A DNA stretch of 64,000 nucleotides, from positions 186,001 to 250,000 of the IMG/VR virus record IMGVR_UViG_3300042502_001233. One strand, written 5' to 3'. The notes under the pieces were generated by a model, which was not told the DNA's origin, made no database searches, and saw nothing but the letters and a program-made list of their open reading frames with translations. Positions 43,490 to 59,167 of this stretch are shown one piece after another (position 1 is the first letter of the stretch; the number at the start of each line of letters is the position of its first letter). A program made the translations under genes and the position numbers.

Positions 43490-43732
43490 TTATAATTGAG
43501 TCGACCCTTGATAAACATCTTGGTTAGTACCTAATAACCAACAACCAGACCCACCACTAACAGTTTTAACCCAAACACTTATATTTGATGAACTAGCTAC
43601 GCTTATATTTACACCGTTTACGGTTATATTACAACCAGTGCTACCACCATATATTTCAGTATATGTGTGTGCTGTTAAATTAGCTGTTTGTGCTGACACA
43701 ATAACGTCATGTATGTTTGAAAAATTTGCCAT
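43490..43732 (-). CDS. Small hypothetical protein (possible virion protein)
   Basis: 80-aa ORF after ATATTTAT at 43749-43756. Confidence 0.6.
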   Translation of the reverse strand: MANFSNIHDVIVSAQTANLTAHTYTEIYGGSTGCNITVNGVNISVASSSNISVWVKTVSGGSGCWLLGTNQDVYQGSTQL

Positions 43733-43766
43733 ATTCTTATGTTTCTTAATAAATATTCATAAAAAC

Positions 43767-43793
43767 AAAAAAAGCTCTGTAATAGAGCTTTTT
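43767..43793 (-). terminator. Terminator after the thyA operon
   Basis: AAAAGCTCT-GTAAT-AGAGCTTTT. Confidence 0.75.
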
Positions 43794-43795
43794 AT

Positions 43796-43918
43796 TTAAT
43801 TTTTAAAACTAAATACCATTAACAAGACAAAACCTATTGCGATTATGACTTGACCCAACAATACCCAACCACTATATTTTAAATCTTTTAGTAATTTTCC
43901 ATATTCATCATGCTTCAT
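43796..43918 (-). CDS. 40-aa single-pass membrane protein
   Basis: Translated by hand as MKHDEYGKLLKDLKYSGWVLLGQVIIAIGFVLLMVFSFKN; overlaps the upstream stop. Confidence 0.45.
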   Translation of the reverse strand: MKHDEYGKLLKDLKYSGWVLLGQVIIAIGFVLLMVFSFKN

Positions 43919-44111
43919 CTTTTTTTATACCTAAGGTTGCGTTTTTATATATTTTTAGTTGGTCTGAAAGATAATGTCTAACATCACCACCATCACAAAG
44001 GACGACACACCAAATGTCATTTTCAAATTGACCACCGTTGGTCACATATATTGCGTAACCTTCTTTGTTACCTTCTACAATTACTGGTATTGGATTTTGG
44101 AACTCTAACAT
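43908..44111 (-). CDS. Small hypothetical protein
   Basis: 67-aa ORF directly after thyA. Confidence 0.6.
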   Translation of the reverse strand: MLEFQNPIPVIVEGNKEGYAIYVTNGGQFENDIWCVVLCDGGDVRHYLSDQLKIYKNATLGIKKDEA

Positions 44112-44114
44112 AAT

Positions 44115-44562
44115 TTAGTTGCTTAAAGGTGCTTTAATTGTTGAGTGTGATTGGTAATTTTCTAGTTCAAATTGAGCTATACTCAGGTAATCTATGTCAA
44201 TTCCTGTTATAGGGCAAGGGTTGAATTTAAGTGTTGGTAACGGAAAAGGTTCTCTCGTTCTTTCAGGAACACTTCCTTGGTGTCTACCAGATAAAAATAT
44301 ATGTTTATGTGAATCAGATGTTAACTTATTATATGTATCCATCGCATATTCATTTTCTTTATTACCCCATAATTCAAATCTTTCATTTAATATTAATTCT
44401 CTACCAATCTGTTCTTTTGCTTGTTCAATATGGTTTGAATATAAATGAACATCACCCAAATTCCCAATCAATTGGTCAGGAACCATATTAACTGATTTTG
44501 CTATTATTTCTAATAACAATCCATAAGAAGCAATGTTAAATGGTAACCCTAAAAACGTATCT
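44115..44562 (-). CDS. thyA: Thymidylate synthase C-terminal chain, exon 2
   Basis: After splicing it reads (V)DTFLGLPFNIASYG...GDVHLYSNH...IKAPLSN. Confidence 0.92.
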
Positions 44563-45577
44563 CATTATATTCATATAAGGTCGTTAATCTTACACAGTTC
44601 TCTTATGAACTTCTTTATGTTTCCATAAAGATTAGACTATATCACAACCCAAATATTTGGGTTTTCATCTTTTCCACTCACTTGAGTGTACTCCCTGTCG
44701 GGATAGTCGTTAGGCATTTATTTATATTGATAATCTGGGTAATTAATACTTTTAATTCTGTTTAAAATTGTTGCTGGTTTAACATTGAAAACTCTAGCAC
44801 ATTCTGATAAAGATTTAAACTCTTCATCGTTAACGATTACTATTTTTTCTTGGTTACCATTATATTTCCCAGTTCTTTTCTCACTTAAAATTTTTTTGGT
44901 TTCTTGTGAATGTTGTTTATTAAAAAATGGGTTATTTTCACCACTTCTATCTAAACATTTTATACATTTTTTTGTCACACTATCTATTCTAGAACCACAT
45001 TCACAAAAAGTTTTACCACCTTTCCAATTAGGATTATCACTTTTAAATCTTGGTTCTTGTTTAGGTGCCTTTCTAAGGTTTTCAATCGCTTTTTTGATTA
45101 TATTAACTTTATTTGGGTGGTTAGATATTAAATCACCACCACTAGCACTTTTCGAAACATTGTATAGTTCATTAAAAGATATTGAATCTAATAATTCTTG
45201 TTCTTTATCTTTATAATTTTCACATTCTAAAATAATTTCTAATTTAAAATTATCTTCACCGTATTTATTAAACGCTCTTTGTAAATGAATACAATGGTGT
45301 TTATTTTTTCTAAGTTCGTTAAAATGTTTTAAAGTTCTTTTTTTTATTTCTTTAGTACTACCTAAATAGTATTTGTTCGTTTCTAAATTAATAATTTTAT
45401 AAATGTATCCCATAATGTTTTTATTATAAATATGTAGATAAATTAAAAAGTAACCCTAAAACGGTATCATCATAAATTTTAGCACGGGATTGTCTACAAC
45501 ATAACTTGTTTAGGTGTTCCCCGTTTAGATGAATTTTTCGAAACATATTACTATGTTAAGCCGCAGATTTTTCGTTT
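44563..45577 (-). mobile_element. Group I self-splicing intron (1015 nt) in thyA
   Basis: The 5' exon ends CCGU and pairs with IGS GCGG (U-G wobble). IGS AUCU pairs with 3' exon AGAU (P10). P3 UUCAUCU/AGAUGAA, R element AACGACUA, S element GAUAUAGUC and a terminal G are all present. Splicing restores RSVDTFLGLPFN in frame. Confidence 0.92.
44718..45413 (-). CDS. Intron-encoded GIY-YIG endonuclease (I-TevI-like architecture)
   Basis: YIYKIINLETNKYYLGST, a CECG...CIKC zinc finger, NUMOD3-like NPFFNKQHSQETK and a C-terminal HTH; has its own ATATTTAT motif at 45426-45433. Confidence 0.9.
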   Translation of the reverse strand: MGYIYKIINLETNKYYLGSTKEIKKRTLKHFNELRKNKHHCIHLQRAFNKYGEDNFKLEIILECENYKDKEQELLDSISFNELYNVSKSASGGDLISNHPNKVNIIKKAIENLRKAPKQEPRFKSDNPNWKGGKTFCECGSRIDSVTKKCIKCLDRSGENNPFFNKQHSQETKKILSEKRTGKYNGNQEKIVIVNDEEFKSLSECARVFNVKPATILNRIKSINYPDYQYK

Positions 45578-45999
45578 ACGGAACGTTGACTCCACATTAA
45601 AGAGATTGTTCTGGTTGGAATCCCAGTTAAATCATTACCTTCCATATTTACTGAATCGTAACCATATTTTTTCCAATATAAATCTTCTCTTTCTTTTTGA
45701 CTCAACTCTCTTGTATAAACTTGAAAATCTGTGTGACAAGGTGGTAGCACCATATCTTTAAGTTTATGTGGTTGCCAAGCAGAAACTCTAAGTCTTCTAG
45801 AATCTGGGTTATTTTTTAACCCATCTATTAATTCAGTTATTTGGTCAACACCTTCAAAGTTACGCCAACCAGAACCATAAATAGGTCCTAAATCACCAAA
45901 ACGTTTAGAAAAGTCCTCATCGTTTTTAATTCGTTCAATAAATTCTTCCTGACTCAACGGTCTACCAGATTCATGTAAATCTTCTTTTTTTACTTTCAT
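45578..45999 (-). CDS. thyA: Thymidylate synthase C-terminal chain, exon 1
   Basis: [20 protein letters not shown] (catalytic Cys) and WSQRSV. Confidence 0.9.
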
Positions 46000-46331
46000 T
46001 CTTTTTTATTTTTATTTATGTTATTTAATTTCTCACATTCTTTTAGATACGCTTTATAAGCATCTCCATTCCAAATGTTACAGTCATTCTTTAAAAGATA
46101 TTCTATTGAAGTATCACCTCGTAAGAACCAAAGAAGTTCTGTTACGATTGTTTTAAATGGCATCTTTTTGGTTGTAAGTAAAGGAAACCCATCTTTCATA
46201 TCGTGACGTATTTGTCTTCCGAATACTGAGATTGTTCCTGTACCAGTACGGTCAGATTTAGGGGTGCCGTTATCAAGAATGTCTTGAAGAAGTTCCGTGT
46301 AATCTTTGTCTAACTTGTTTATAAATCCCAT
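45996..46331 (-). CDS. thyA: Thymidylate synthase N-terminal fragment (separate ORF)
   Basis: [23 protein letters not shown] and NIW; ends in a TGA that overlaps the ATG of the next part (ATGA). Confidence 0.9.
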
Positions 46332-46355
46332 AGGCTTTTTCTTTTACGTTTTATT

Positions 46356-46508
46356 TTATCTAGTAGTAACTGTAGTATCAGCGCTATCATTTGTATCTTC
46401 TTCTTCATCTTTTATTTCTGTAATGTGTTGATACCACAATGGGTTTGGTAATCCACTATAATGGTCCCATAACCCATCATCAATAAGATTTACTTTATTT
46501 TTCGTCAT
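46356..46508 (-). CDS. 50-aa hypothetical protein
   Basis: Translated by hand as MTKNKVNLIDDGLWDHYSGLPNPLWY... Confidence 0.5.
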   Translation of the reverse strand: MTKNKVNLIDDGLWDHYSGLPNPLWYQHITEIKDEEEDTNDSADTTVTTR

Positions 46509-46713
46509 TGAAATATTTGTTAATAATTTCCAATCTATCTTCAGCGTCAGCTAAAAGGCGTAGTGATTCTGTAGCATCTGCTAAAAAATCGTTAGCAGTG
46601 TGGTCACCAATACCTACACCTTGGTTTTCTAATAAGTCTAAAGACATTAATGCTTTTTCTTTATCAGCTAGCGCTTGCGCTTTTAATGCTGATATTACTC
46701 TTGTTTTTCCCAT
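46495..46713 (-). CDS. Small hypothetical protein
   Basis: 72-aa helical ORF containing GIGDH. Confidence 0.65.
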   Translation of the reverse strand: MGKTRVISALKAQALADKEKALMSLDLLENQGVGIGDHTANDFLADATESLRLLADAEDRLEIINKYFNDEK

Positions 46714-46722
46714 GTTTTTAAT

Positions 46723-47001
46723 TTATTCGTCTTTTTGTAATTTTAAATATTCGTCTATTTGTTCTAAACTTGGTTTAGCGTTTTCGTGTTCTTTGGTAAA
46801 GTTGTAGGTTTTACCGTAGCTAGTTGTAATTTCTTTTGTACCTTCAAAAAACTCAATAAGTTCTTTTTTGGTACATGACTCAACAACATGTCCTTGGTCA
46901 TCAATAATTAGGAAAATGTTACCTGTTGGAATATGATACGCTTTAAGCACATCACCTTCAAAATTTAACAACCCTAATCGTTTGTAGTCTTTGTTTTTCA
47001 T
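46723..47001 (-). CDS. Hypothetical protein
   Basis: 92-aa ORF. Confidence 0.6.
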   Translation of the reverse strand: MKNKDYKRLGLLNFEGDVLKAYHIPTGNIFLIIDDQGHVVESCTKKELIEFFEGTKEITTSYGKTYNFTKEHENAKPSLEQIDEYLKLQKDE

Positions 47002-47423
47002 TATCTTCTAATTAAAATGTATTTGTAATTTTTTTGTGGTATTTCAACTTCTGGTTCAGAAACTTTTCTAACAGACTCATAAACCTTTTGGTTAAAATGA
47101 TAGTTGGTCAGTTTTACTTGAGCCATGCGTACATATTCACCATCTGGACCCCTATGCACTAGATAACCATCAATTGTTGGGTAAAAATAAACCATACCAC
47201 CTTTACATCTAGTGTTTTCAACCAAATCTCTATAGTTACCTCTAAATGTTTTGGTGTTAATAGGTTTAGTATTCATTACAACTTTACTGTGTTCATGAAA
47301 ATCTATTGGACTATAAATTTTATGTTCATCCATTTCAATATGCATAAACATTGGCATATCAACAACACCAATAAAAGGACATCCTTCGACGTCCTTTACT
47401 GTTGTTTTATTTGTAATTAACAT
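47001..47423 (-). CDS. Hypothetical protein
   Basis: 140-aa ORF. Confidence 0.6.
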   Translation of the reverse strand: MLITNKTTVKDVEGCPFIGVVDMPMFMHIEMDEHKIYSPIDFHEHSKVVMNTKPINTKTFRGNYRDLVENTRCKGGMVYFYPTIDGYLVHRGPDGEYVRMAQVKLTNYHFNQKVYESVRKVSEPEVEIPQKNYKYILIRR

Positions 47424-47425
47424 AA

Positions 47426-47893
47426 TTAGTCAGTTACCACACTGGCACCAGCAGAAGCTGTTATGTTCTCGTAATCACCCATGGTTGATTTTAGCTTGGT
47501 GTACAATGCTGGGTCTATACTATCAGTTGTTTCATAGTAAGCAATTACAGCTTGCATCTTTGCAATCATTTCTTTGGTGTAATGATTTACTTTGATTTGT
47601 TTGTCAGCGTCTTTTAACTCGTTAACTTCTTTGATGATAGCTGCTGTGTCAACCTTGTCTAATTTTTGAAAATCATATTTTTTGATATGAGAATTGAAAA
47701 TAACACCTTGACTGTCTGCTATTTCAAATCTGGTGTAATCTGTCTCAGAAACATTAGGGTACTTGTACTGCCCACCGTTGTTAAAAATAATAACCAAATC
47801 TTTGGTTTGAGTGTTGTAGGTTGAAGCGCAAATATTAGAAGATGCGTAGATTGCTTTAACCAAATTGTCTTTTGTTTGTTTTTTTAAAATCAT
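47426..47893 (-). CDS. KTSC-domain protein
   Basis: SSNI...YNTQTKDLVIIFNNGGQYKYPNV...ADSQGVIFNSHIK is a KTSC pattern. Confidence 0.8.
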   Translation of the reverse strand: MILKKQTKDNLVKAIYASSNICASTYNTQTKDLVIIFNNGGQYKYPNVSETDYTRFEIADSQGVIFNSHIKKYDFQKLDKVDTAAIIKEVNELKDADKQIKVNHYTKEMIAKMQAVIAYYETTDSIDPALYTKLKSTMGDYENITASAGASVVTD

Positions 47894-47914
47894 TCTTTTT
47901 GTATTAATAAAATG

Positions 47915-48151
47915 TTATTGTGCGTGTGTTTTATAGGAAACAATATCTTTCATTGGATATATTTTCCCAGTGCTAGTTAGCGAATTGTTGATGTCATCTC
48001 GTTCATCAACTATTACGATGATATAATCACCAGTAATCATAAGACCACAATCCAAATATTCTAATCTTGTGACTGAAGGTAAACCCTTGGTAATTACCGA
48101 ATCTTTAAGCAGAAGTTCAACTTTGCTAAATTTAGGTGCTGTATTTGTCAT
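47915..48151 (-). CDS. Hypothetical protein
   Basis: ATG at 48151 lies downstream of a host-type promoter. Confidence 0.6.
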   Translation of the reverse strand: MTNTAPKFSKVELLLKDSVITKGLPSVTRLEYLDCGLMITGDYIIVIVDERDDINNSLTSTGKIYPMKDIVSYKTHAQ

Positions 48152-48169
48152 GTCATTATATAGTTTGTA

Positions 48170-48233
48170 CAAATATACGAATATTTATCTAATAAATCAA
48201 TATTGCATTATTAAAAATAAATTAGTATCTTTG
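48170..48233. promoter_or_regulatory. Divergent Bacteroidota-type promoters
   Basis: Minus strand: TTG(48200-48198)-N20-TATATTTG(48177-48170). Plus strand: TTG(48203-48205)-N20-TATCTTTG(48226-48233). Confidence 0.75.
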
Positions 48234-48259
48234 CTAAAAATAAAATTAACCCGTTTACT

Positions 48260-50068
48260 ATGAACAGAGAAATTTATCCTAAAGTTAAAATAATTATGAA
48301 TCAAGCTATCAAAGAAGCTAAAAGTTTCGATGATACTAAAATAAGACCTGAACATATTATCCTATCAATGATGATTGATAATGATAATGAATGTACTAGG
48401 CTTTTAAATCAAATGAAAGTAGATACCTTTGACTTATATGATAAAGTCTCTGATTATTTAAGACAAAGCGATTTAACCCCAAGAGTTGCAAACACAAGTA
48501 GAAAAACGTTACCATTTTCAGATGAAACAAAAGCAATTATCAAAAGCCTTGATAAAGAATGTGAAAAGTTAAATCATAATATGATTGATACAACACATGT
48601 TATGCTAGGTATTTTAGCAGCAAAGCTACCGATAAATGAATTGTTATCTAAAAGTGGTATAACGTATAACCGTTTTAAAAAAACATTAAAAGATATGGAA
48701 AATTACGATGTAAAAAACAGTGCATTTAGTGGTGATGACCACGAAGAAAACGACAGTTTTAGAAAAAAACCTAACAGACCAAACGACTCTAAATCAAAAA
48801 CACCAGTGTTGGATAACTTCTGTAGAGACGTATCCAAAGCTGTAGAAAAAGGAGAAATAGACCCAGTGGTTGGTCGTGAAGTTGAAATCAAAAGAGTTTC
48901 ACAAATACTTTCACGTAGAAAGAAAAATAACCCAGTACTTATCGGAGAACCAGGCGTTGGTAAAACAGCCATCGTAGAAGGACTCGCACAGCTTATCTAT
49001 GAAGGTAACGCACCTAGAACACTTACTGGTAAAAAAATATTTACCTTGGATTTGGCTAGTATCGTTGCTGGTACAAAATATAGAGGTCAGTTTGAAGAAC
49101 GAATGAAAGCCGTGTTGGAAGAATGTAAAGCCAACCCAGATATTGTGTTATTTATTGACGAGTTACACACAATTGTTGGTGCTGGGAATTCCTCAGGTTC
49201 GTTAGATGCTAGTAACATCTTTAAACCAGCTTTGGCCAGAGGTGAAATACAAATCATCGGAGCAACAACACTAGATGAATACCGCGAAAACATTGAAAAA
49301 GATGGTGCGCTTACTAGACGTTTCCAACAAGTTCTTGTTGAGGAACCTACTCTAGAGCAAACCAAAACTATTTTGATGAATATCAAAGAAAAATACGAAA
49401 AACATCACAGAGTAAAATATACTGAAGAAGCTATTGACGAGTGTGTTAAACTATCTTCTAGATACATAATGGATAGAGCTATGCCAGACAAAGCCATCGA
49501 TGTATTGGATGAAGCTGGCGCCACCACAAACGTTAGTGTTGAAAAACCAGAAAATGTCAAGACTTTAGAATCTCAAATTAGTGAAATCCAAGTTCAAAAA
49601 AATGAAGTTGTTAAAAAACAACAATACGAAGAGGCGGCCAAGTTAAGAGATAAAGAAAAAGAATTAGATGACAAATTAAAAGAAGCCAACGCTAAATGGC
49701 AAGAAGAATTAGAATCTAATATTACGGAAGTTGGTGTTGACTTGATTTCAGAAGTTGTTTCTATGATGACTGGAATCCCACTTAATAAAATTTCAACACA
49801 AGAAACCAAAAAATTACTTAACATGGACAAAGCTCTTATGGGTAAAGTTATCGGTCAAGACGTAGCTGTATCTAAAGTAGTTAAAGCCATCAAACGTAAC
49901 CGTATCGGTATCAAAGATAAAAACAAACCAGTTGGTTCGTTCATCTTCTTAGGTCCTACTGGAGTTGGTAAATGTATTTGTGGTGATACAGAAATAATAG
50001 TCAGAAATAAAGTAACTGGTGAGATTAAAATTATTAACATAAAAAATATCGTACCCGACACCAATTAG
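48260..50068 (+). CDS. clpC: ClpC-type AAA+ unfoldase, N-terminal half fused to a split-intein N fragment
   Basis: Clp N-domain, [15 protein letters not shown], a UVR-like M-domain ([11 protein letters not shown]), then FLGPTGVGK|CICGDT... Confidence 0.93.
49973..50065 (+). mobile_element. Split intein N fragment (31 aa)
   Basis: [31 protein letters not shown], an intein block A beginning with Cys1 right after the Walker A lysine. Confidence 0.85.
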
Positions 50069-50114
50069 TCCGAACTTTTTAAAACTTCATGATATTTATT
50101 ATAAAATAGATATT

Positions 50115-51335
50115 ATGAAAATAAAAACGAGTAAAGGTATTAAAGAAATAAATGAAGTTTTTACAGATTTGGAAAGTTTAAAAAACCAAGTCTTAAAATT
50201 AGATAAAAACATACGCTACGATAACGAAACAATTAAAAAAGAAATAGAATCACTGATGGTTAAATTAAAAGAACAAGAAGGTGTTGTTTCATTATCGTTG
50301 ATGCGTGGTTGGTTGGTGAAAAATTACGGTTTTAAAACTAAGAAATGGGGTAATATAGAGTATTTCATTGAACGTGGTTGGAATGATAAAGACGCTTTGA
50401 TTGAGTTGGATAAACGTAATAAAGAATTAAAACAAAGGAACCGTTTATGTGAAGAGTATTGGATTAATAAAGGTTACACTAAAGAAGAAGCTATTAACGA
50501 AATTTCTAAACAACAACAAAAATCATCTAAATGTGTTAAAACTTATCATGGTAAATCTAAAAAAATGTTAGCTGATAAAGGTTACACCGAAGAAGAAATA
50601 AAACGTATTTGTTTAACACCAACAAATTCTGAATTCTGGGTTAATAAGGGGTATTCTGAAAATGAGGCAAAAGATATTATTAGTAAAAACCAAACTGAAG
50701 CTGCGAAACAAGTTGATTTTGAAAAAAGACTAATACCATCAAATATTGAGTATTGGGTTGAGAAAGGTTTTAATTATCAACAAGCTAAACTAAAAGTAAC
50801 TGAACAACAAACAACTTTTAGTTTAGCTATATGTATTCAAAAATATGGTGAAGAAGAAGGTAAAAAAAGATTTACTGAAAGACAAAATAAATGGTTAAAT
50901 TCATTATTAACTAATGGTAATATGGTTATTGGATATTCTAAAATATCTCAAGATTTGTTCTATAAAATTTTAGAAATATATGATATTAGTGATAAAGATA
51001 AGGTTTATTTCGCAACACACAATAGTGAGTTCAAATTAGGTAAAAAAGAAGGTGGTGTTTGGTTATATGATTTTACCGATATTAAAAATAAAAAAATAAT
51101 TGAGTTTCATGGTGATATGTTCCATGGAAACCCAAATAAATATAAAGCTGGTGATTATCCACACCCATTTAGGAAAAATATAACCGCACAAGAAATGTGG
51201 AATAAGGATAAAAGTAAATTAGATGTTGCCTTAGAAGAAGGTTTTGATGTGTTGGTTATATGGGATTCAGAATATAGATGGGGAAACAAACAAGAAATAA
51301 TAAATAAATGTGTTTCTTTTCTAAATAAAAAGTAG
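50115..51335 (+). CDS. Vsr/DUF559-like (PD-(D/E)xK) putative homing endonuclease with repeated (Y/F)WxxKGY...EEA modules
   Basis: C-terminal YDF...IIEFHGDMFHG...DKSK...EEGFDVLVIWDSE; located between the intein halves. Confidence 0.75.
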   Translation: MKIKTSKGIKEINEVFTDLESLKNQVLKLDKNIRYDNETIKKEIESLMVKLKEQEGVVSLSLMRGWLVKNYGFKTKKWGNIEYFIERGWNDKDALIELDKRNKELKQRNRLCEEYWINKGYTKEEAINEISKQQQKSSKCVKTYHGKSKKMLADKGYTEEEIKRICLTPTNSEFWVNKGYSENEAKDIISKNQTEAAKQVDFEKRLIPSNIEYWVEKGFNYQQAKLKVTEQQTTFSLAICIQKYGEEEGKKRFTERQNKWLNSLLTNGNMVIGYSKISQDLFYKILEIYDISDKDKVYFATHNSEFKLGKKEGGVWLYDFTDIKNKKIIEFHGDMFHGNPNKYKAGDYPHPFRKNITAQEMWNKDKSKLDVALEEGFDVLVIWDSEYRWGNKQEIINKCVSFLNKK

Positions 51336-51346
51336 TATATTTGTAT

Positions 51347-51724
51347 ATGAAAATAAAATTTAATATAAAACTATATAAGATAAAAATTATACTGTATATT
51401 TCAGATGATTTAATTAGTGTGGCTGACAAGATTAAGAAAAACCACAAAGTAAAACTATATAAATTATCGAATAAAGAAATAAAAAAAATAGATGGTTGTG
51501 TTATTGGTCAATTTATGGAAAATGATAATTTACTTTATGTTTTGATTCAATCTAAAAATGGTAAGGTATGTATTAACACACTAACACACGAAATTTATCA
51601 TTTAACTAGTAAAATAATGAAACATAATGATTTTGATTTTTATCATTCTGACGAACCATTTGCAAGATTAAATGCTTTTTTAAATAAAAAAATTATTAAA
51701 AATAAAAAAATTAAATTAATATGA
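51347..51724 (+). CDS. Small HExxH (zincin-like) protein nested in the fractured clpC
   Basis: NTLTHEIYHLT...DEPFARL; TATATTTG promoter element at 51336-51343. Confidence 0.55.
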   Translation: MKIKFNIKLYKIKIILYISDDLISVADKIKKNHKVKLYKLSNKEIKKIDGCVIGQFMENDNLLYVLIQSKNGKVCINTLTHEIYHLTSKIMKHNDFDFYHSDEPFARLNAFLNKKIIKNKKIKLI

Positions 51725-51924
51725 ATGAAATTAATGCTGGTTGTTATAAATTAACAACAACTAAAAAAACCACAAATGGTTTGAAAACACAAGAATATAT
51801 TGTTTTAATTAGTGGTTATAAACCCTTCTTAAAGATGGAATCGTTCTGGTCAATAAAAGATAATTGTTTTGTTAGTTCAGATATTCTCAGAGCTGTAGAA
51901 ACTAAATACGAAAAAATTAATTAA
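51721..51924 (+). CDS. Small hypothetical protein nested in the fractured clpC
   Basis: 67-aa ORF overlapping the upstream stop. Confidence 0.55.
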   Translation: MNEINAGCYKLTTTKKTTNGLKTQEYIVLISGYKPFLKMESFWSIKDNCFVSSDILRAVETKYEKIN

Positions 51925-51931
51925 TAAAAAT

Positions 51932-53593
51932 ATGGAAGATTTAAAAAAATTCATGGATGACACTGTTAAATGTGAAATTCTAAAATACGCTAGTTATGAC
52001 GATAAAAATGGTGGTATTGCTAAACCAGAATATAAATTTACTGTTCTAATCAGAACGCTAAATTTTGAAAATAAAACTAATAATGATATAAAATTAATTA
52101 TTGATGAGGCTGGTTTGTTATTAAATTACGATAATTGTCATGTTTCAATGTTTTCTATCGGTAAACTAAACGGAGAAGTTTTTTCAGTTAATGAAACTGA
52201 TGATGACTTTGCTGTCTTAGATAAACATTTAAGTGATGGTAAAACAATTGTTTTATATTCTGCTAAAATTGATACTGGAAAAGTGTATTACAGATATTCT
52301 TTGGTTAAAGATAAACCATTAAATAGAATGGAAGAAATTAAAAAAAGAGTTGATAAATCAGATAATGTTTTATTATTTGATAAACACGAATTAGAGTCTT
52401 TAAAAAAGATTACTAAAACAACCAAAATATCTGATTATGAAGTTTTAACTGATGATGGTTTTGTTGACATAGAGGCATTACACGAAACAATACCGTATGA
52501 AGTATATCATCTAAAATTAAAAGACGGTAAAGAACTTAAATGTGCTGATAATCATATTGTATTCGTTAGTGAATACCATGAAACTACTTTTGAACCAATT
52601 GGTTTAACCGAAATATTTGTTAAAAATTTAGAAATAGGTTCGTTTGTTATGGTGTCTGATGATAACGGTAATCTAACAGAATCTGAAGTTGTTGAACTTA
52701 CGAATTTAGGTTATGAAGAAGTAATGTATGACCTTGAACTAAAAGAAGGTTCCAATAGACGATATTATACCAATGGTATTTTATCACATAATACGATGTT
52801 GGCTAAATTGTTAGCAGAAGAAGTATTTGGTGATGCTGATTCATTGTTTAGAATCGATATGTCTGAGTATATGGAGAAATTCTCTGTGTCGAGATTGGTT
52901 GGTCCACCTCCTGGATATGTTGGGTATGAACAAGGTGGTCAATTGACTGAGAAAGTTCGTAGAAAACCACACTGTGTTGTTTTGTTTGATGAGATTGAAA
53001 AAGCTCATGAAGATGTATTCAACTTGTTATTACAAATGCTAGATGAAGGTCATTTGACTGACGGATTAGGTCGTAAAGTTAATTTCAAAAATGCTCTTAT
53101 TATCATGACATCTAACATTGGTGTTAAAGAAGCAAACTCATTTGGTAAGACAATGGGTCTTGAGACACCAAACGGAATGTTAAATGAAGAAAACAAAGCG
53201 CGCGCTATTATCGAAAAAGCTCTTAAAAAGAAATTCAAACCAGAGTTCTTAAACCGTATCGATGAAGCAATTATCTTCAACAGCCTTAAACGCGAAGACA
53301 TCCACGAAATCATCAACGTTGAGTTTGAAAAACTTAGAAAAAGAGTTGTTGAAATGGGTTACGATTTAACCATTGAACAAGCAGCGTTAGATTTCTTGGC
53401 AGAACATGGATACGATGAAGAATACGGAGCTAGACCTCTTACCAGAACACTTCAACATTATGTAGAAGATACGGTGGCTGATGAAATTTTGGCTGACCAT
53501 ATTGTCGAAGGACAAACCATCAATATCGTTTATGATAAAGATAACGATACATTGATTGTAAAACAACCAAAAACACCCAAACCAAAAAAATAA
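51932..53593 (+). CDS. clpC: Split-intein C fragment fused to the C-terminal half of ClpC
   Basis: ...YYTNGILSHN|TMLAKLL..., RIDMSEYMEK, GPPPGYVGYEQGGQLTE, LFDEIEKAH, TSNIG, PEFLNRID and YGARPL. Confidence 0.93.
   Translation: MEDLKKFMDDTVKCEILKYASYDDKNGGIAKPEYKFTVLIRTLNFENKTNNDIKLIIDEAGLLLNYDNCHVSMFSIGKLNGEVFSVNETDDDFAVLDKHLSDGKTIVLYSAKIDTGKVYYRYSLVKDKPLNRMEEIKKRVDKSDNVLLFDKHELESLKKITKTTKISDYEVLTDDGFVDIEALHETIPYEVYHLKLKDGKELKCADNHIVFVSEYHETTFEPIGLTEIFVKNLEIGSFVMVSDDNGNLTESEVVELTNLGYEEVMYDLELKEGSNRRYYTNGILSHNTMLAKLLAEEVFGDADSLFRIDMSEYMEKFSVSRLVGPPPGYVGYEQGGQLTEKVRRKPHCVVLFDEIEKAHEDVFNLLLQMLDEGHLTDGLGRKVNFKNALIIMTSNIGVKEANSFGKTMGLETPNGMLNEENKARAIIEKALKKKFKPEFLNRIDEAIIFNSLKREDIHEIINVEFEKLRKRVVEMGYDLTIEQAALDFLAEHGYDEEYGARPLTRTLQHYVEDTVADEILADHIVEGQTINIVYDKDNDTLIVKQPKTPKPKK
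52328..52792 (+). mobile_element. Split intein C fragment (about 155 aa from the internal Met133)
   Basis: VLTDDGF, ELKCADNHIVF (block B, with a CxxH variant of TxxH), MYDLEL (block F) and SHN|T (block G). Confidence 0.85.
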
Positions 53594-53596
53594 TAT

Positions 53597-53621
53597 AAAA
53601 CCCACGAAAGTGGGTTTTTTT
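53597..53621 (+). terminator. Rho-independent terminator after clpC
   Basis: AAAACCCAC-GAAA-GTGGGTTTTTTT. Confidence 0.88.
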
Positions 53622-53643
53622 GTTTTAGAGAATATTTATTGTT

Positions 53644-54180
53644 ATGAAACAAATGATAAAACAATTATTGCGAGAAGCCATTGATAAAACAATCACATGT
53701 AAAAAATGTGATTGGCATTGGAAAGAGTCTGAATCAGACAAAAAAGATTTGTACGTTTGTCATAAATGTGGTCATGATAACACACCAAAAAAAGAAAATA
53801 TTAACGAACGTTTGCTAACCAAACATAAAGAAGATATTTTGGATGTTGCTGATTTTGTTAATTTTGCTAAAAAATATTTAGATATTGATGATGATATTAA
53901 AGTTGAATTGGCTTTTGAAAGAACACCAGACCTTAGAACAACCGCATATTACAACAACGGTGAAAAACGTATGAAGATATATGTTAAAAATAGAGCTATT
54001 ATAGACGTATGTCGTTCAATTGCTCATGAATTAACACACCACAAACAAAATCTAGAAGGAAGAATAACAGATGCCAGTAAAGATGGTCAAGACGGTAGTG
54101 ACATAGAAAATGAAGCTAACTCAGTTGCTGGAGTTATAATAAGAAAATGGGGTCGTATACATCCTGAAATTTATGAATAA
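53644..54180 (+). CDS. Tagged protein with a zinc ribbon and an HExxH metallopeptidase-like domain
   Basis: MKQMIKQLLRE; CKKC...CHKC; SIAHELTHHKQ...ENEAN. Confidence 0.7.
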   Translation: MKQMIKQLLREAIDKTITCKKCDWHWKESESDKKDLYVCHKCGHDNTPKKENINERLLTKHKEDILDVADFVNFAKKYLDIDDDIKVELAFERTPDLRTTAYYNNGEKRMKIYVKNRAIIDVCRSIAHELTHHKQNLEGRITDASKDGQDGSDIENEANSVAGVIIRKWGRIHPEIYE

Positions 54181-55024
54181 TACAAGAACACTACTAAGAG
54201 AAGAAATTGCCTTAAACGATAGAAAATTGCTATTGAATGAGCACTCTATGTCATTGATACAAAATAGCGAGTATATAAAACATGTTTTGGGTATTCAGAC
54301 ACCATTGTTTGAGTATTATTCTTTTGAACTTAGAAAACAAATAATTGACGAAGCTTTATCAATACAAGGTGTTTTACAATCAGCTAACAGCTATTTAGTT
54401 GGTCAGATTGAAAAAGGTAAAGAATATGTTGTAAAAGCTATTGATACCGTTAAATCAACTAAAGATATTGTAATATTATTTAAAAATTTAATTTTATCAC
54501 CAGAAAATATGGTTAAAGCCAATAGAGGGTTAAATAAAATATGTACAGATTTAACAAATGATGCTCAATCTGTAATTACCTATATAACTGAAAAATTACC
54601 TAATATAGTTAACTTTACCGAAGGAATGGTAAATATGTTAAACAAATTAAAAAGAATTGTAACTGACGAAATAAACGGTAACGGTTGGACAGGTTTTCTA
54701 GCTAAATTTGGTCTTGCATGTTTAATGACTTACATTAAAATAAATGTATTTGATAAAATACTTAAATTAGGTATTCAGTTTATTAAAGATGGTGCAGTAC
54801 TTTTCACAGGGGTTCAAGGGTTGCTTCAATTGTTTAAAAATTTTAAAGAAACAATAATTCAAAATGGTGATATAAAACAAATAATAAATTGGATAACCAA
54901 CATAGGTAAAGAAGCCGCATCATTAAATTTAAGTTTAGCGTTTGATATAATGGTAGCAGTAACAACCGTTTGCACAGCTTTGTTAGCCGTTATTAATTTC
55001 AAATTTGATTTGAGAAAACAATAA
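54173..55024 (+). CDS. Hypothetical protein with a tag-like N terminus
   Basis: MNNTRTLLREEI...LLLNE. Confidence 0.65.
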   Translation: MNNTRTLLREEIALNDRKLLLNEHSMSLIQNSEYIKHVLGIQTPLFEYYSFELRKQIIDEALSIQGVLQSANSYLVGQIEKGKEYVVKAIDTVKSTKDIVILFKNLILSPENMVKANRGLNKICTDLTNDAQSVITYITEKLPNIVNFTEGMVNMLNKLKRIVTDEINGNGWTGFLAKFGLACLMTYIKINVFDKILKLGIQFIKDGAVLFTGVQGLLQLFKNFKETIIQNGDIKQIINWITNIGKEAASLNLSLAFDIMVAVTTVCTALLAVINFKFDLRKQ

Positions 55025-55036
55025 AATAAATATATT

Positions 55037-55345
55037 ATGAAAAATACAATCAAAGGTGGTAAAGCAGATAAAATGACACCACAAGACATCGCAAATAAAT
55101 TCAAAGTATCAGTTTCTGATATTGAAGCTCAATTAAAAAAAGGTATTGAGGTTGAGTTAGAACATACTGATAATAAAGAAAAAGCTAGAGAAATAGCTAT
55201 GGACCATTTGTCAGAATTTCCAGATTACTACGATAGACTTGAAAAAATGGAAAATAACCCTTCTAAAGAATTTAAAACAACTGAAATAAACGAGAACAAC
55301 AAAATATTAATTAAACGTCTCATAAAAGAGAATTTAAACAAATAA
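55037..55345 (+). CDS. DUF5661-like small phage protein
   Basis: LKKGIEVELEHT...AREIAMDHL.E.PDYY..L..ME; C-terminal KILIKRLIKE. Confidence 0.7.
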   Translation: MKNTIKGGKADKMTPQDIANKFKVSVSDIEAQLKKGIEVELEHTDNKEKAREIAMDHLSEFPDYYDRLEKMENNPSKEFKTTEINENNKILIKRLIKENLNK

Positions 55346-55350
55346 AAAAC

Positions 55351-55779
55351 CTATAATGGGTCATCTTTTTTACCAATATATTCATAACTAAAACACAACC
55401 TTTTATTATCGTAAACATGGTCTTTGTATGTGTTGGCAGAACTTACATCTTTTCTTAATTTTTTATTTTTGCTGGTAGGTTTCCAAAGTGGTGAATTCTC
55501 CCAGAAAGCACCCAATCTAGGGTGAGCAGTCCTTGAAAAATATCTGTAACCTTGGTCAATATGATGCTGTGCGATAGCAGTAGAAAATCTAACACCAATA
55601 CCCATCCCTTGAAAATCTGGTAATACAACATTCCTGTGTCCTCTCCATGCATTTTTTAAAGTACCGCTAGGCATTGATATACTAGCGAAAAAACTAACTA
55701 CTTGGTCACCCCAAACACCAATGTAGCATCTAGAAGCTTTGTTTACGTTTCCGTCTAAATAGTGATGGTCTTTAAACAT
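55351..55779 (-). CDS. GNAT acetyltransferase domain (frame open upstream to the T9 run at 55842)
   Basis: FKDHHYL, RNVVLPDFQGMGIG (acetyl-CoA binding) and RTAHP. Confidence 0.8.
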   Translation of the reverse strand: MFKDHHYLDGNVNKASRCYIGVWGDQVVSFFASISMPSGTLKNAWRGHRNVVLPDFQGMGIGVRFSTAIAQHHIDQGYRYFSRTAHPRLGAFWENSPLWKPTSKNKKLRKDVSSANTYKDHVYDNKRLCFSYEYIGKKDDPL

Positions 55780-56444
55780 TCGCCAACTATCATTTGTTGT
55801 GCGATATATTTTGAGAGTGATTTCTGGTCGGACAAAAAAAAACCGTGAAGTAATTCACCTGTATCTGTATTGATAACCCAATCTGGTTCTAACCAATCTA
55901 TAATATCAGAATGACATGTGGATATAACCACATTCTCCAAACCGTTTTTATCTATATATCTTGACAAAGCAACACTGGCCGCTTTAGCCACGTTTCTATC
56001 AACCACACTGGTGTATTCATCAATAACACAATTGGATTTTAATTTACGAGCTAAATCAGCTCTAAACTTCTCACCGTTAGACAACACATGGTAAGGTTTA
56101 TACCAAGAAGGTATTGTGTTTAAACCAACAGCGGTTAGTTTATTTATACCATCATCTGGTGATTCAAAATGCGATACTATGGATTTGTTTGGGTCCCATG
56201 TTGGTGTTTCTTCAACACCAAAATTTTTAAGAAGTGTTGATTTACCAGAACCACTGGAACCAACGATTACACCCAACTTGAATTTTGTTGGTAATTTGGT
56301 TGGAACTTTCCACGGGTAAAATTTTGAGATTCCATCGAATTTACAATCAAACGCTGTTTCACTGGCTTCAATATATTCGTCACGGTCCACACTTGAAGTA
56401 AGAGGTGTGGTTTCTCTTTTTAATTTTTGTATTAATTTTTCCAT
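55755..56444 (-). CDS. ABC-type ATPase domain, joined to GNAT by a -1 frameshift
   Basis: GSSGSGKST, LSNGEKFRA, IDEYTS and STCH; the tail after GFF looks like out-of-frame translation. Confidence 0.85.
   Translation of the reverse strand: MEKLIQKLKRETTPLTSSVDRDEYIEASETAFDCKFDGISKFYPWKVPTKLPTKFKLGVIVGSSGSGKSTLLKNFGVEETPTWDPNKSIVSHFESPDDGINKLTAVGLNTIPSWYKPYHVLSNGEKFRADLARKLKSNCVIDEYTSVVDRNVAKAASVALSRYIDKNGLENVVISTCHSDIIDWLEPDWVINTDTGELLHGFFLSDQKSLSKYIAQQMIVGECLKTITI
55834..55842 (-). other. U9 putative -1 frameshift/slippage site
   Basis: CAC GGT TTT TTT TTG; the -1 frame reads ...VRPEITLKIYRTTNDSWRMFKDHHYL. Confidence 0.65.
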
Positions 56445-56490
56445 GATTTGAAACATTTATAAATAAATATCTCGTTATCATAAAAAAATA

Positions 56491-56526
56491 AAAGACTAAG
56501 GTGATTATTCAATCACCTTAGTCTTT
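56491..56526. terminator. 16-bp perfect hairpin (terminator-like)
   Basis: AAAGACTAAGGTGATT-ATTC-AATCACCTTAGTCTTT. Confidence 0.75.
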
Positions 56527-56545
56527 AATATTTTCTAGTTCGAAA

Positions 56546-56755
56546 TTACTTTCTACCTTCAGTTAATTGTACCAATTTTTTCTCTAATGCAGCAATTCTG
56601 TTTTCAAATAGAGAGTTAGCTTTTTTACTTTTCTGAGCTTGCTCATTAAGCCATTCTTGTTTTTTTACTGCAACTGCTTCATTTACAATGTTGTCGATTA
56701 AATCAACAAGGTGAGATTCTTTGATTTTAACTGTTTTTTTAGTTAAGTTTGACAT
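56546..56755 (-). CDS. Small protein with a KIKESxLVxLI...VNE motif (possible head-associated)
   Basis: 69-aa ORF after an ATATTTAT motif. Confidence 0.6.
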   Translation of the reverse strand: MSNLTKKTVKIKESHLVDLIDNIVNEAVAVKKQEWLNEQAQKSKKANSLFENRIAALEKKLVQLTEGRK

Positions 56756-56822
56756 GTCTTTAAGTTTTTATTAAAATCTTATTTATAAATAAATATATCA
56801 AACATACCAAAAAAACCAATTT

Positions 56823-56978
56823 TTATCTAATAAAAATATCTACATCGTAAATTTCTAATAACGCTTCAGTTTTTAAATTTTTAATTTTAGCAAATAATTC
56901 AGCGGCCTCAATCAAAGTTTTGGCTGAAACCGTATTAATTGTCTCACCATCTTTTGTTTTTAATGCAAATTTTTTCAT
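56823..56978 (-). CDS. 51-aa hypothetical protein
   Basis: Translated by hand as MKKFALKTKDGETINTV...; host-type promoter at 56993-57023. Confidence 0.55.
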   Translation of the reverse strand: MKKFALKTKDGETINTVSAKTLIEAAELFAKIKNLKTEALLEIYDVDIFIR

Positions 56979-57164
56979 AGGTTAATTTTTTACAAATATA
57001 CTTATAAATATTTAAAAAAGCAATAAAAATTTTAATTTATCAAACCTTTTATTTTATTTAACACTTATAGGTTTTTATATCATTCCCTTGGATTATGACC
57101 CTAGAGCGTTTACAACTTTTGGTAGGGTGGTTAAATAACTTACTTTAAAATTATTACTCATATG

Positions 57165-57695
57165 TTAACATTTTCTATCAGCAGCCGTTGAAGCAGCCCA
57201 TGCTTCAGGTTTTATTTTGAAATCGTAACCCATACCTAAAATGTAACCAACAGCAGATTGTAACGCTTTATTAGAATCGTGTCTTGGGTCTGGGTTGATA
57301 TCCGCGTGAATCTCCAATGGAATTTCATATACATCTAACAACTCAGCGATTTTAGTGGCAACCTCGATAGATTTACCTACCTCGAATACCATTCTCTCGT
57401 TAACCAATTCCTTGTCTCTTTTTCTACCGTCAGAATCTTTTTTCATGAAATCATGGTTGTAAGTAGCTGATACTATCATACCACCACGACCCCAAATAAC
57501 GCCACCACCCAAATCTTCAGTTGCGGTAATAAGAATTACCGTAGCAAACTTATAAAGCGTGCCTTTGATTTTTTGTGAGTCAGTACCAATAGATACTTTA
57601 AGTGTACGGTTTTTTTCCATTTGTTCATCGAACAAATTTTGTAAATAATCCACTAAATCTTCTTCAATTACCTTGTTGTTTCTAATCCATTTCAT
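57165..57695 (-). CDS. RNase H-like YkuK/DUF458 family protein
   Basis: VSIGTDSQ...EVGKSIEVA...EIHADIN...KPEAWAASTAAD. Confidence 0.8.
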   Translation of the reverse strand: MKWIRNNKVIEEDLVDYLQNLFDEQMEKNRTLKVSIGTDSQKIKGTLYKFATVILITATEDLGGGVIWGRGGMIVSATYNHDFMKKDSDGRKRDKELVNERMVFEVGKSIEVATKIAELLDVYEIPLEIHADINPDPRHDSNKALQSAVGYILGMGYDFKIKPEAWAASTAADRKC

Positions 57696-57724
57696 AACAT
57701 TTGTTTTTTTGTGTTATATGTAAT

Positions 57725-57751
57725 AAAAAAGGCTCCCACAACAGGAGCCTT
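57725..57751 (-). terminator. Terminator-like hairpin
   Basis: AAGGCTCC-CACAACA-GGAGCCTT with an adjacent A run. Confidence 0.75.
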
Positions 57752-57757
57752 ATATTT

Positions 57758-59167
57758 TTAATTAAAATTGGTTGTTGGTAACAACTCCTTTAATTTGTTA
57801 TACTTTGTTTCTCCTATATCTTCTACATTAACGACAATTCTAAATAACGACCCACCATTACTTTTATCAAGCATGGTTATTTCTTCTGGAATCTCAATAT
57901 CTTTGTTGCCTTTGATGTTTAAAAACTCTAAATTTTTTAAATAACCTATTTCTTTAGGTAACACTTTAAGTTGGTTGTTGGTCAATGCCAACATATTCAA
58001 CGTAGCTAAATTACCTATAGACGGATGTATTTCACCCAATTTTGCGTTGGTGATTATAAGTTGGTCTAGTTTTTTAAACTTAGAAATATTAGGTAACTTT
58101 CTAATCTCTTTGTTCATAAACCTAATCGTAGGCAACTTATCATCCAACAACTCAAATAAACTCTCTGCAAAACCAAATTGCATCAAGTAATCTAAGTATT
58201 TGTTCGAATCAATACCACCTTTATATCCCTTGGCCATTTCCAACAACTCGTCATGGAAATAGTTAGTGATACCTTCACTCTCACTAATCACATTTTCAAA
58301 AATGCTAACGTTCTGTCCATTTTGTCTGTCTTTTAACTGATTGGTTTCAAAATGAATCTGAAATAACTCCTTGGTTTTACCCTCAAAAAACTGATTAGGA
58401 ATTATGATATAAATATCTGATTTCTTCCCGTTAGGTTTTCTATGTCCGTTAGTATATGATTTAAACATACCATTTCCTTCTCTGGCGGTACACCAGTTTG
58501 CGAAATTCGCAAACACTACACTAGCTTCAGTTGTTTTAGGGATATACAGCGTAAACTTTCTATCTCTAACTGGAATAACAGCTTGACCAGCGTCAACAAA
58601 TTTTTGTAACGTTCGCTCAATCGCTGAACTATCTTTTTCAATAAACGGGTCAACAGCGTCAAACAACTGAGACAAAGATTTATATTGATTAATATTTGTT
58701 GGGTCTGTTATTCCTTTAAGGCTATAACTGGCCAAACATAAATCTTTGAATTTTCGTTTTCTTTTGTTATCCTCAAACAAAGTCAAATATTTGTTGGCTT
58801 GTGGTAAATCTTCACTTACAAAACGAACCGCCATATCTCTTGAATTAGGTTTATCGCTCTTTAACAAACGAGAAAATAAATTCAACATCCATTGCAAATA
58901 GATTTTATTTTCAGTTGGGTCAGCAGCTATCATTTCACTAAATACTTTAGAACAAACACTAATTTTTTTAAGAGTTCTTTCTTTTTCGTTACCTTTGCTA
59001 GAAACAATTGCTAATAATCCATAACCGTTTGATACAATGTCAGCATCATAACCTTCAGAGTTAATCGCTGCAAGTTTTGCATCTACTAATACTTCTTCAG
59101 TAGATTCGAACACATCGAATAGTTCCGCTAAAAATACAATTCTATCTGTAATACTGTTTTTTTTCAT
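57758..59167 (-). CDS. Leucine-rich-repeat protein with an N-terminal DPT...YLQW / NWCT domain
   Basis: LxxLxLxxNxLxxLPxxIxxLxxL repeats at the C terminus; host-type promoter at 59184-59214. Confidence 0.8.
   Translation of the reverse strand: MKKNSITDRIVFLAELFDVFESTEEVLVDAKLAAINSEGYDADIVSNGYGLLAIVSSKGNEKERTLKKISVCSKVFSEMIAADPTENKIYLQWMLNLFSRLLKSDKPNSRDMAVRFVSEDLPQANKYLTLFEDNKRKRKFKDLCLASYSLKGITDPTNINQYKSLSQLFDAVDPFIEKDSSAIERTLQKFVDAGQAVIPVRDRKFTLYIPKTTEASVVFANFANWCTAREGNGMFKSYTNGHRKPNGKKSDIYIIIPNQFFEGKTKELFQIHFETNQLKDRQNGQNVSIFENVISESEGITNYFHDELLEMAKGYKGGIDSNKYLDYLMQFGFAESLFELLDDKLPTIRFMNKEIRKLPNISKFKKLDQLIITNAKLGEIHPSIGNLATLNMLALTNNQLKVLPKEIGYLKNLEFLNIKGNKDIEIPEEITMLDKSNGGSLFRIVVNVEDIGETKYNKLKELLPTTNFN

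Follow-up and report, generated by a model that had tools for sequence, protein, structure and literature searches.

Fractured genes were described in 2009 in a paper whose 26 loci all affect enzymes of DNA synthesis or repair and which uses neither the word Clp nor the word chaperone (PMC2677866). Vsr-like endonucleases were first predicted from the same loci (PMC2677866), and one of them, I-Bth0305I, was shown to be active (PMC3239194). Natural split inteins with an N-terminal fragment (IntN) of only 15-37 amino acids (aa) are also established (PMC13014065; also PMC10189870), and Cat (PDB 6dsl) is an engineered consensus of the atypically split AceL-TerL and GOS-TerL inteins (PMC11766414, PMC13014065). 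Insertion into a P-loop is a known intein habit, seen at DnaB site b, MCM site a and RFC-S site a, and ClpP is the only Clp-system intein host mentioned in the same paper (PMC4760082). Here we describe a locus at positions 48260-53593 of a 64,000-nucleotide (nt) window, which is part (positions 186,001 to 250,000) of the 362-kb viral contig IMGVR_UViG_3300042502_001233. Within it a clpC-like gene has very probably been fractured at the Walker A motif of its second AAA+ module (D2) by a split intein with a 31-aa IntN, Cys1 and Thr+1, lying within a mobile cassette. This reading draws on anatomy and homology, on empty and contiguous alleles, on selection and on a patchy distribution, each of them observed. 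The kind of selfish element, a short-IntN split intein in a fractured-gene layout, is already known; the Clp ATPase host, Thr+1 in this intein lineage and a fused passenger domain are new.

The two genes carry the following exteins and intein parts:

48260-49972, plus strand: N-extein, 571 aa, with the Clp N-domain, the first AAA+ module (D1), lid, UVR-type middle motif and the start of D2, assigned with Pfam

49973-50068, plus strand: predicted IntN, 31 aa and a stop codon, directly after the Walker A Lys; Cys1 codon at 49973-49975

52322-52792, plus strand: predicted C-terminal intein fragment (IntC), about 155 aa, placed by family alignment; block B His at 52553-52555, terminal Asn at 52790-52792

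52793-53593, plus strand: C-extein, 266 aa and a stop codon, with Thr+1 (52793-52795), D2 Walker B, MGL loop (53153-53161) and D2-small, assigned with Pfam

The N gene (48260-50068, plus strand, 602 aa) ends in ...FLGPTGVGK followed by CICGDTEI...PDTN and a stop codon, and the C gene (51932-53593, plus strand, 553 aa) holds ...YYTNGILSHN followed by TMLAKLL. A check of the open reading frames (ORFs) found all coordinates and junction sequences given in the original prediction, which a model had made from the sequence, to be correct, as was its sum of 571 + 266 = 837 aa for the joined exteins; the uninterrupted relative at locus L024 has 831 aa. Pfam matches Clp_N, AAA, AAA_lid_9 and UVR in the N gene, where the D1 module is complete (Walker A GEPGVGKT), and AAA_2 (residues 287-445) and ClpB_D2-small in the C gene. 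Neither half contains a frameshift or an internal stop. Identity of the N-extein to the corresponding part of the uninterrupted clpC genes in L024, L025, L027 and L029 reaches 81%, and among solved structures the C-extein is closest to the ClpC proteins of S. aureus and B. subtilis (E about 1e-77). In these alignments Thr552 is the counterpart of Thr+1, and MGL falls on the AGF tripeptide in the D2 loop of S. aureus ClpC, in agreement with the ClpP-docking-type loop proposed at the outset; the tripeptide is mostly MGF in relatives.

The joined protein has the architecture of the ClpC type: an N-domain, two AAA+ modules, a short UVR-type middle motif, no long ClpB coiled coil and a docking-type tripeptide. 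Because its NCBIfam equivalog matches all fall below the curated cut-offs, we call it ClpC-like rather than an orthologue. The product of the two halves would be a ClpC-type unfoldase that may work with ClpP. No ClpP family was matched among the part of the window ORFs that was scanned, and the Peptidase_S77 ORF of the window is a T4-type prohead protease. The Walker A Lys lies in the N half and the Walker A Thr, Walker B and the remainder of D2 in the C half; D2 is therefore incomplete in either half alone and depends on both, as had been claimed.

The intein parts belong to a large family, with 722 database proteins matching the intein-bearing part of the C gene. The catalytic set of class 1 inteins is present: Cys1, block B His, block F Asp, block G His-Asn and Thr at +1. 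Of the 120 C-half relatives that match best, 119 have KCADNH as block B, all 120 have MYDLEL as block F, and 118 have HN/T as block G plus the +1 residue. The window copy has every catalytic residue, identical to the family consensus, and its block B has Ala in place of the usual Thr. Cys comes first in all 18 distinct IntN sequences recovered, and IntN is 28-36 aa long in relatives. The IntC core spans about 125-155 aa, preceded by an optional leader of about 25 aa, and the usual IntC start Met of relatives corresponds to window position 52328. The C ORF has 287 aa before Thr+1, of which only residues 131-287 or so are intein; most relatives have about 158 (median of the 120 best).

Locus L014 (7920-8438) has a contiguous 173-aa mini-intein, encoded within one ORF, at the position of the window intein. 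The first 29 or so residues of the mini-intein are colinear with the window IntN and the rest with C ORF residues 132-287, approximately. In the window, a stop codon follows IntN and IntC sits in a separate ORF, both colinear with the L014 intein. Because L014 carries the same intein in contiguous form at the same site, IntN and IntC represent opposite ends of a single Hint domain. Whole-domain work was done on the natural contiguous ORFs of L014 and L024, so that the window halves were never joined through the stop codon, and the short IntN rows were excluded from the folding alignment because MAFFT wrongly placed them on block B. In searches of PDB, the family profile matched the Cat IntC (6dsl_B, E 3.7e-8), gp41-1 (3.3e-6) and VidaL (6e-5), and the single L014 sequence gave hits in the same order. 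All 50 of the 50 best Foldseek matches of an AlphaFold2 (AF2) model of the L014 intein against PDB are Hint-fold domains (inteins, one bacterial intein-like domain and two hedgehog domains), with VidaL first. The split point lies within or after the first helix of this model (residues 28-45), where the predicted local distance difference test score (pLDDT) is just 53-65, and the alignment of the Cat IntC begins at the start of the minimal IntC. On the model, the place of the split appears to be the same as in the AceL/GOS-TerL group, after the first helix.

Several features are shared with AceL-TerL, GOS-TerL and Cat: a short IntN (25-37 aa there, 31 here), Cys1 and the motifs K-C-(A/S)-D-N-H and Y-Y-T-N-G-I-x-S-H; the split may likewise lie at their position after the first helix ('S2'). 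The AceL-TerL and GOS-TerL inteins differ in having a terminase host and Cys+1, compared with a ClpC host and Thr+1 here, and IntC has 104 aa in the Cat lineage compared with about 155 aa in the clpC intein (with the optional leader and, in the window, a further 130-aa domain). The combination of Cys1 with Thr+1 is a known working pair, found in Mxe GyrA (PMC11766414). VidaL, the top structural match, and PolB16 OarG (PDB 6vgv; PMC10189870) are likewise natural, metagenomic and endowed with a very short IntN; both are split earlier, after strand beta-2 (S1), with an IntN of 15-16 aa (PMC13014065), and both sit in other hosts. PolB16 lacks the catalytic cysteine, whereas the clpC intein has Cys1. 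The P-loop inteins of other ATPases also lie within Walker A and take their Ser, Thr or Cys nucleophile from the motif itself, but those of DnaB, MCM and RFC-S are contiguous and reside in replication proteins, whereas the clpC intein is split and resides in an unfoldase. Full-text literature searches, which mostly did not extend to subscription journals, found no intein reported in ClpA, ClpB, ClpC or ClpX. Of the novelty first claimed for the locus, the protein-quality-control ATPase as an unusual host stands; the rarity of a short IntN was overstated, given the established examples.

Alleles in relatives define the insertion site to the residue. Uninterrupted relatives, including L024, L025, L027 and L029, read ...FLGPTGVGK/TLLAKL..., with the junction GVGK/T, and the flanks of the occupied alleles join to the same sequence. 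Among 80 loci fetched by C-extein similarity alone, most have an uninterrupted clpC and six have the intein cassette. Intermediate forms also occur: in L020 (7894-8378) the two genes overlap by 16 nt and there is no endonuclease gene, and L021 (6079-9989) is split, lacks the endonuclease and has a 240-aa extension fused to IntC. The region 53644-59167 of the window is partly syntenic with L021:10008-15299 (NCBI metagenome assembly GCA_040403575.1), sharing an ABC_tran-like ORF and a leucine-rich-repeat protein of 469-475 aa; this downstream synteny makes L021 a genuine genomic relative that is without the endonuclease gene.

The fractured clpC architecture recurs far beyond chance. A search of metagenomes for homologous loci, suggested with the original prediction, found it on some 20 independent contigs that differ in sample and source, one NCBI assembly among them. 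This speaks against misassembly, which had been named as grounds for refutation, and so against the broader alternative in which either the locus is misassembled or the insert is removed at the RNA level as a group I or II intron. The contig is indeed metagenome-derived, and thyA in the same window has a GIY-YIG ORF within it and a match to group I intron DNA from other phages, which lends the alternative some colour. Intein blocks are nevertheless in frame at both junctions, exactly at the Walker A break, and Rfam reports no intron family, either across the window at its gathering score or within 43500-54000 at E <= 1, on which grounds RNA splicing was rejected. We give the alternative as a whole practically no chance of being right.

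The cassette looks mobile, to judge from its being less diverged than the host gene and from its patchy distribution. Cassette DNA (IntN, endonuclease gene and IntC) is 79-96% identical, with synonymous divergence (dS) of 0.1-0.9, between phages whose exteins have diverged to just 59-76% DNA identity and dS from 1.3 to above 3, where it is saturated. Calculated against five or six relatives, the ratio of nonsynonymous to synonymous divergence (dN/dS) is 0.07-0.25 for IntN and 0.08-0.19 for IntC, values as low as those of the exteins.

These ratios bear on the possibility that the locus is a decaying relic, in which the intein of the window copy no longer splices, leaving either a dead gene or an N half (N-domain and D1) that functions by itself. 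The N half does have an intact D1, and the extra 130-aa fusion and the extra ORFs suggest an ageing insertion. However, the window copy retains its full catalytic set in consensus form, its exteins and both intein halves stand at dN/dS 0.07-0.25 against several relatives, and both halves are free of frameshifts and internal stops. We regard a relic as very unlikely.

The gap between the halves measures 1863 nt, has 27-86 stops per frame and contains three ORFs (406, 127 and 67 aa), much as first described (about 1.9 kb, stops in every frame, three genes). The identity of the first ORF as a homing endonuclease gene and the non-intein nature of the first 130 aa of the C gene had been missed. The features are:

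50115-51335, plus strand: predicted free-standing homing endonuclease gene, 406 aa, with N-terminal helical repeats and a C-terminal Vsr-like domain (about residues 290-406), from homology and AF2/Foldseek

51341-51724, plus strand: 127-aa ORF, TTG start (first ATG at 51347), a passenger gene with an HExxH motif, matching phrog_1365 (E 8.7e-8)

51721-51924, plus strand: 67-aa ORF of uncertain gene status, no homologue found

51932-52321, plus strand: orphan domain of 130 aa, fused in frame to the N terminus of IntC (C ORF residues 1-130), delimited by comparison with relatives

The 406-aa protein matches phrog_22677 and has 568 database homologues, a 72%-identical one of which is named 'very short patch repair' endonuclease by the Joint Genome Institute. 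Searched directly against Pfam, NCBIfam and PDB, the window protein gave no sequence match, 3r3p included, so that its identification needed a family alignment and a structure model. Six of 12 aligned family members match Pfam DUF559 and MTES_1575 REase at about 1e-4. The AF2 model has a mean pLDDT of 82.7, rising above 90 over most of residues 321-400, and its best Foldseek matches include E. coli Vsr (1vsr, 1cw0) and the catalytic domain of I-Bth0305I (3r3p, template modelling score 0.63 on target). Foldseek probabilities were 0.95-1.00 with E 0.03-0.27 for the full-length query, the E-values being weak because 406 aa were compared with domains of about 100-150 aa. D319, E330, G333 and H337, the D...E..G...H core of the EDxHD group, are invariant in the family alignment. 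The gene has a dN/dS of 0.18-0.26 and lies between the halves in 16 of 20 distinct occupied loci. By its modelled fold the 406-aa protein is a predicted Vsr-like ('EDxHD') homing endonuclease, which presumably acts on intein-free clpC.

Like I-Bth0305I (3r3p; PMC3239194), the 406-aa protein combines an N-terminal helical region of DNA-binding type with a C-terminal Vsr-fold nuclease. Whereas I-Bth0305I has NUMOD motifs and its gene lies within a group I intron, the gene for the 406-aa protein stands free between the intein halves, and the protein contains four copies of another helical repeat, of about 20 aa. With a Vsr-like homing endonuclease gene in the gap, the locus is a classic 'fractured gene'. 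It resembles the loci of Dassa et al. in that an enzyme gene is broken by a split intein in a phage context, that intein-less alleles exist and that the gap holds a free-standing ORF for a Vsr-like endonuclease, preceded by an element of its own. It differs from them in its ClpC-type host, in a split near the N end of the intein and in a gap that also holds passenger ORFs, one of them fused to IntC.

Among the passengers, the 127-aa ORF is a real gene, with an 89%-identical homologue at the same position in L023 and a dN/dS of 0.17. The 67-aa ORF has no Pfam or PHROG match and no tblastn match in 103 loci except on the window's own contig. The 130-aa domain, which matched nothing in Pfam or PHROG, is common to P0002-P0018 and P0057 (57-88% identity) and has a dN/dS of 0.29-0.33, that is, it is constrained. 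Only eight relatives of it were found among 1.84 billion representatives, all free-standing and 52-248 aa long (five of 127-248 aa); the longer ones end right where the fusion begins, and the two that we looked up lie in phage contexts without clpC. An N-terminal extension on IntC, of several unrelated kinds, is present in about 30% of the 120 best relatives. Some fusion-bearing relatives, such as L021 and L023, have no Met at the old IntC start, and the fusion is thus obligatory there; in the window the internal Met at 52328 is kept, so that both forms of the C gene product may be made. Shine-Dalgarno sequences are rarely used by this phage (8 of 52 starts) and are therefore uninformative for the choice between the C-gene starts at 51932 and 52328.

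We propose the following history and mechanism, the splicing steps of which are modelled on class 1 intein chemistry and on the AceL/Cat lineage (PMC11766414). A mobile cassette would have invaded the clpC-like gene at the D2 P-loop, between GPTGVGK and T. It would have consisted of a class 1 intein of the AceL-TerL/GOS-TerL lineage, split after its first 30 or so residues, together with the free-standing gene for the Vsr-like endonuclease. Once both proteins are made, IntN would dock on a partly folded IntC and complete the Hint fold; Cys1 would form the thioester, Thr+1 would attack it and Asn287 would cyclise. Trans-splicing of the two halves would release an 837-aa ClpC-type unfoldase with Walker A restored to GPTGVGKT. 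The endonuclease would cut intein-free clpC alleles in co-infecting phages, leading the whole cassette to be copied in. In the window copy the gap has also collected passenger genes, among them a 130-aa orphan that has lost its stop codon and become fused to IntC; this domain would leave with the excised intein.

Not all results favour this proposal. The Pfam Intein_splicing match at C ORF residues 132-287 (E 2.7e-5) reaches 24.5 bits against a cut-off of 35.8, and a search of PDB with IntN alone gave no significant match. The AF2 model of the L014 intein is of low confidence, with a mean pLDDT of 66 and its poorest values at both splice junctions. No co-conversion tract was seen in the extein flanks. 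The 130-aa fusion, moreover, could slow or block splicing in the window copy, to which the retained Met at 52328, and the selection that keeps the fusion in relatives without that Met, are the counterweight. On the other side, empty sites, the contiguous intein of L014, near-invariant blocks, low dN/dS and kinship to Cat, gp41-1 and VidaL all argue for the split intein (31-aa IntN, Thr+1) that the original prediction had recognized.

Putative transcription signals at the locus are:

48181-48188, plus strand: ATATTTAT, candidate promoter element 72 nt upstream of the N gene (start codon 48260)

50092-50099, plus strand: ATATTTAT, candidate promoter element 15 nt upstream of the endonuclease gene (start codon 50115)

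53597-53618, plus strand: terminator-like hairpin directly after the C gene (9-bp stem, four GC pairs, T run), a consensus match only

The octamer ATATTTAT is enriched in the window, with 35 copies compared with 14.8 +/- 3.9 in shuffles. The copies share the orientation of the genes and in many cases precede a start codon by roughly 5-100 nt; the octamer is a possible promoter element of the phage. A further copy at 53632 precedes the gene that follows the locus, and none stands before the C gene. Sigma-70-like sites are at chance level (37 compared with 32.7 +/- 6.6 in shuffles), and the T4 late-promoter motif TATAAATA does not occur in 47800-53800. No terminator-like site was found in the stretch from the N-gene stop to the C gene; apart from the hairpin, the locus has a single such site, at 49921-49942 on the minus strand, inside the N gene. 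The simplest reading is that the C half would be transcribed with the endonuclease block or by read-through.

This leaves little for a regulatory split, in which the phage would time or gate D2 activity by expressing the halves from different promoters at different stages, or in which splicing would become conditional through the fused 130-aa domain. Both halves are indeed required for an intact D2 nucleotide site, the endonuclease gene heading the downstream block has its own ATATTTAT, and extensions of some kind on IntC are common among relatives, as noted above. The earlier claim of a host-type promoter for the N half and internal promoters for the C half, however, was not confirmed, sigma-70-like sites being at chance level. 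The timing switch built on it fares no better: the same motif class, ATATTTAT, precedes both the N gene and the downstream block while the C gene itself is without it, and no terminator-like site separates the two halves. Close relatives manage with an uninterrupted clpC, which makes the split dispensable, and the patchy distribution of a young cassette fits a selfish element. Nothing suggests different timing of the two halves, and we consider regulation by the split unlikely.

The D1 module is a target as well. The same intein lineage occupies the D1 P-loop (GEPGVGK/T) in at least a dozen relatives, among them L016 and L026 (contiguous), L010 and L013 (split, no endonuclease) and L019 and L033 (split, endonuclease present); occupancy of this site was read by eye, the automated count being too low since tblastn matches overlap the junction. 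Three loci encode a three-gene ClpC with split inteins at both the D1 and the D2 Walker A (L010:4041-9236, L013:3538-9203 and L019:5666-12564), and in L019 each of the two has its own endonuclease gene. Correct assembly of such a ClpC would need the pairs not to cross-react. A different split intein, starting CVLGDT, lies two residues earlier in the D1 P-loop, after GEPG, in L067:4583-7780 and L077:3592-7819; the gap of L077 holds an unrelated 382-aa ORF.

A bolder reading, which we think rather unlikely to hold, is that the short-IntN lineage is more than a one-site parasite: it occupies both ClpC P-loops, uses the gap as a landing pad for genes that become fused to IntC, and, through the 130-aa domain, could cage IntN-IntC association or delay it, making assembly of the D2 ATPase conditional. 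If so, the three-gene ClpC of L010, L013 and L019 would need two co-evolved, mutually orthogonal atypically split inteins, and the 130-aa domain would be released as part of the excised intein.

The source of the window is a T4-like jumbo phage: its ORFs include a gp20-type portal, a gp23-type capsid protein, a T4-type terminase and a prohead protease. The GC content of the window is about 30%, and the nearest cultured phage by capsid protein is a Flavobacterium phage, at only 38% identity. The large terminase gene (34596-37595, minus strand, 999 aa; Pfam Terminase_6N, Intein_splicing, LAGLIDADG_3) is interrupted by a second intein of the window, unrelated to the clpC intein, which is contiguous and includes a LAGLIDADG endonuclease domain; the clpC intein is split. 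The thymidylate synthase gene thyA (44115-46331, minus strand) is broken into three ORF pieces (45996-46331, 45556-45999 and 44115-44519), with a GIY-YIG/I-TevI-type endonuclease ORF (44718-45413) between the last two. A 77-nt stretch of this region (44569-44645) is 88.6% identical to annotated group I intron DNA of Staphylococcus phages; despite this stretch, Rfam finds no intron at thyA even at E <= 1. Two small plus-strand ORFs near clpC carry HExxH motifs, 51341-51724 (HEIYH) and 53644-54180 (HELTH), the latter with weak matches to putative metallopeptidase families; both may encode metallopeptidase-like proteins adjoining the unfoldase gene.

Few natural split inteins with a short, synthesisable IntN have been characterised (AceL-TerL, GOS-TerL, VidaL and PolB16), and they are valued for semisynthesis and labelling. 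The clpC intein family offers several hundred natural variants with Cys1/Thr+1 chemistry in a new extein context, and the paralogous inteins at two sites of one protein are candidates for orthogonal pairs. Five states co-occur in one clade, namely the empty site, the contiguous mini-intein, the split intein without an endonuclease, the split intein with one, and the split intein with both an endonuclease and fused passengers; with all five side by side, the 2009 model of gene fracturing becomes directly testable. Inteins thus reach phage proteostasis genes, beyond the genes of replication and packaging.

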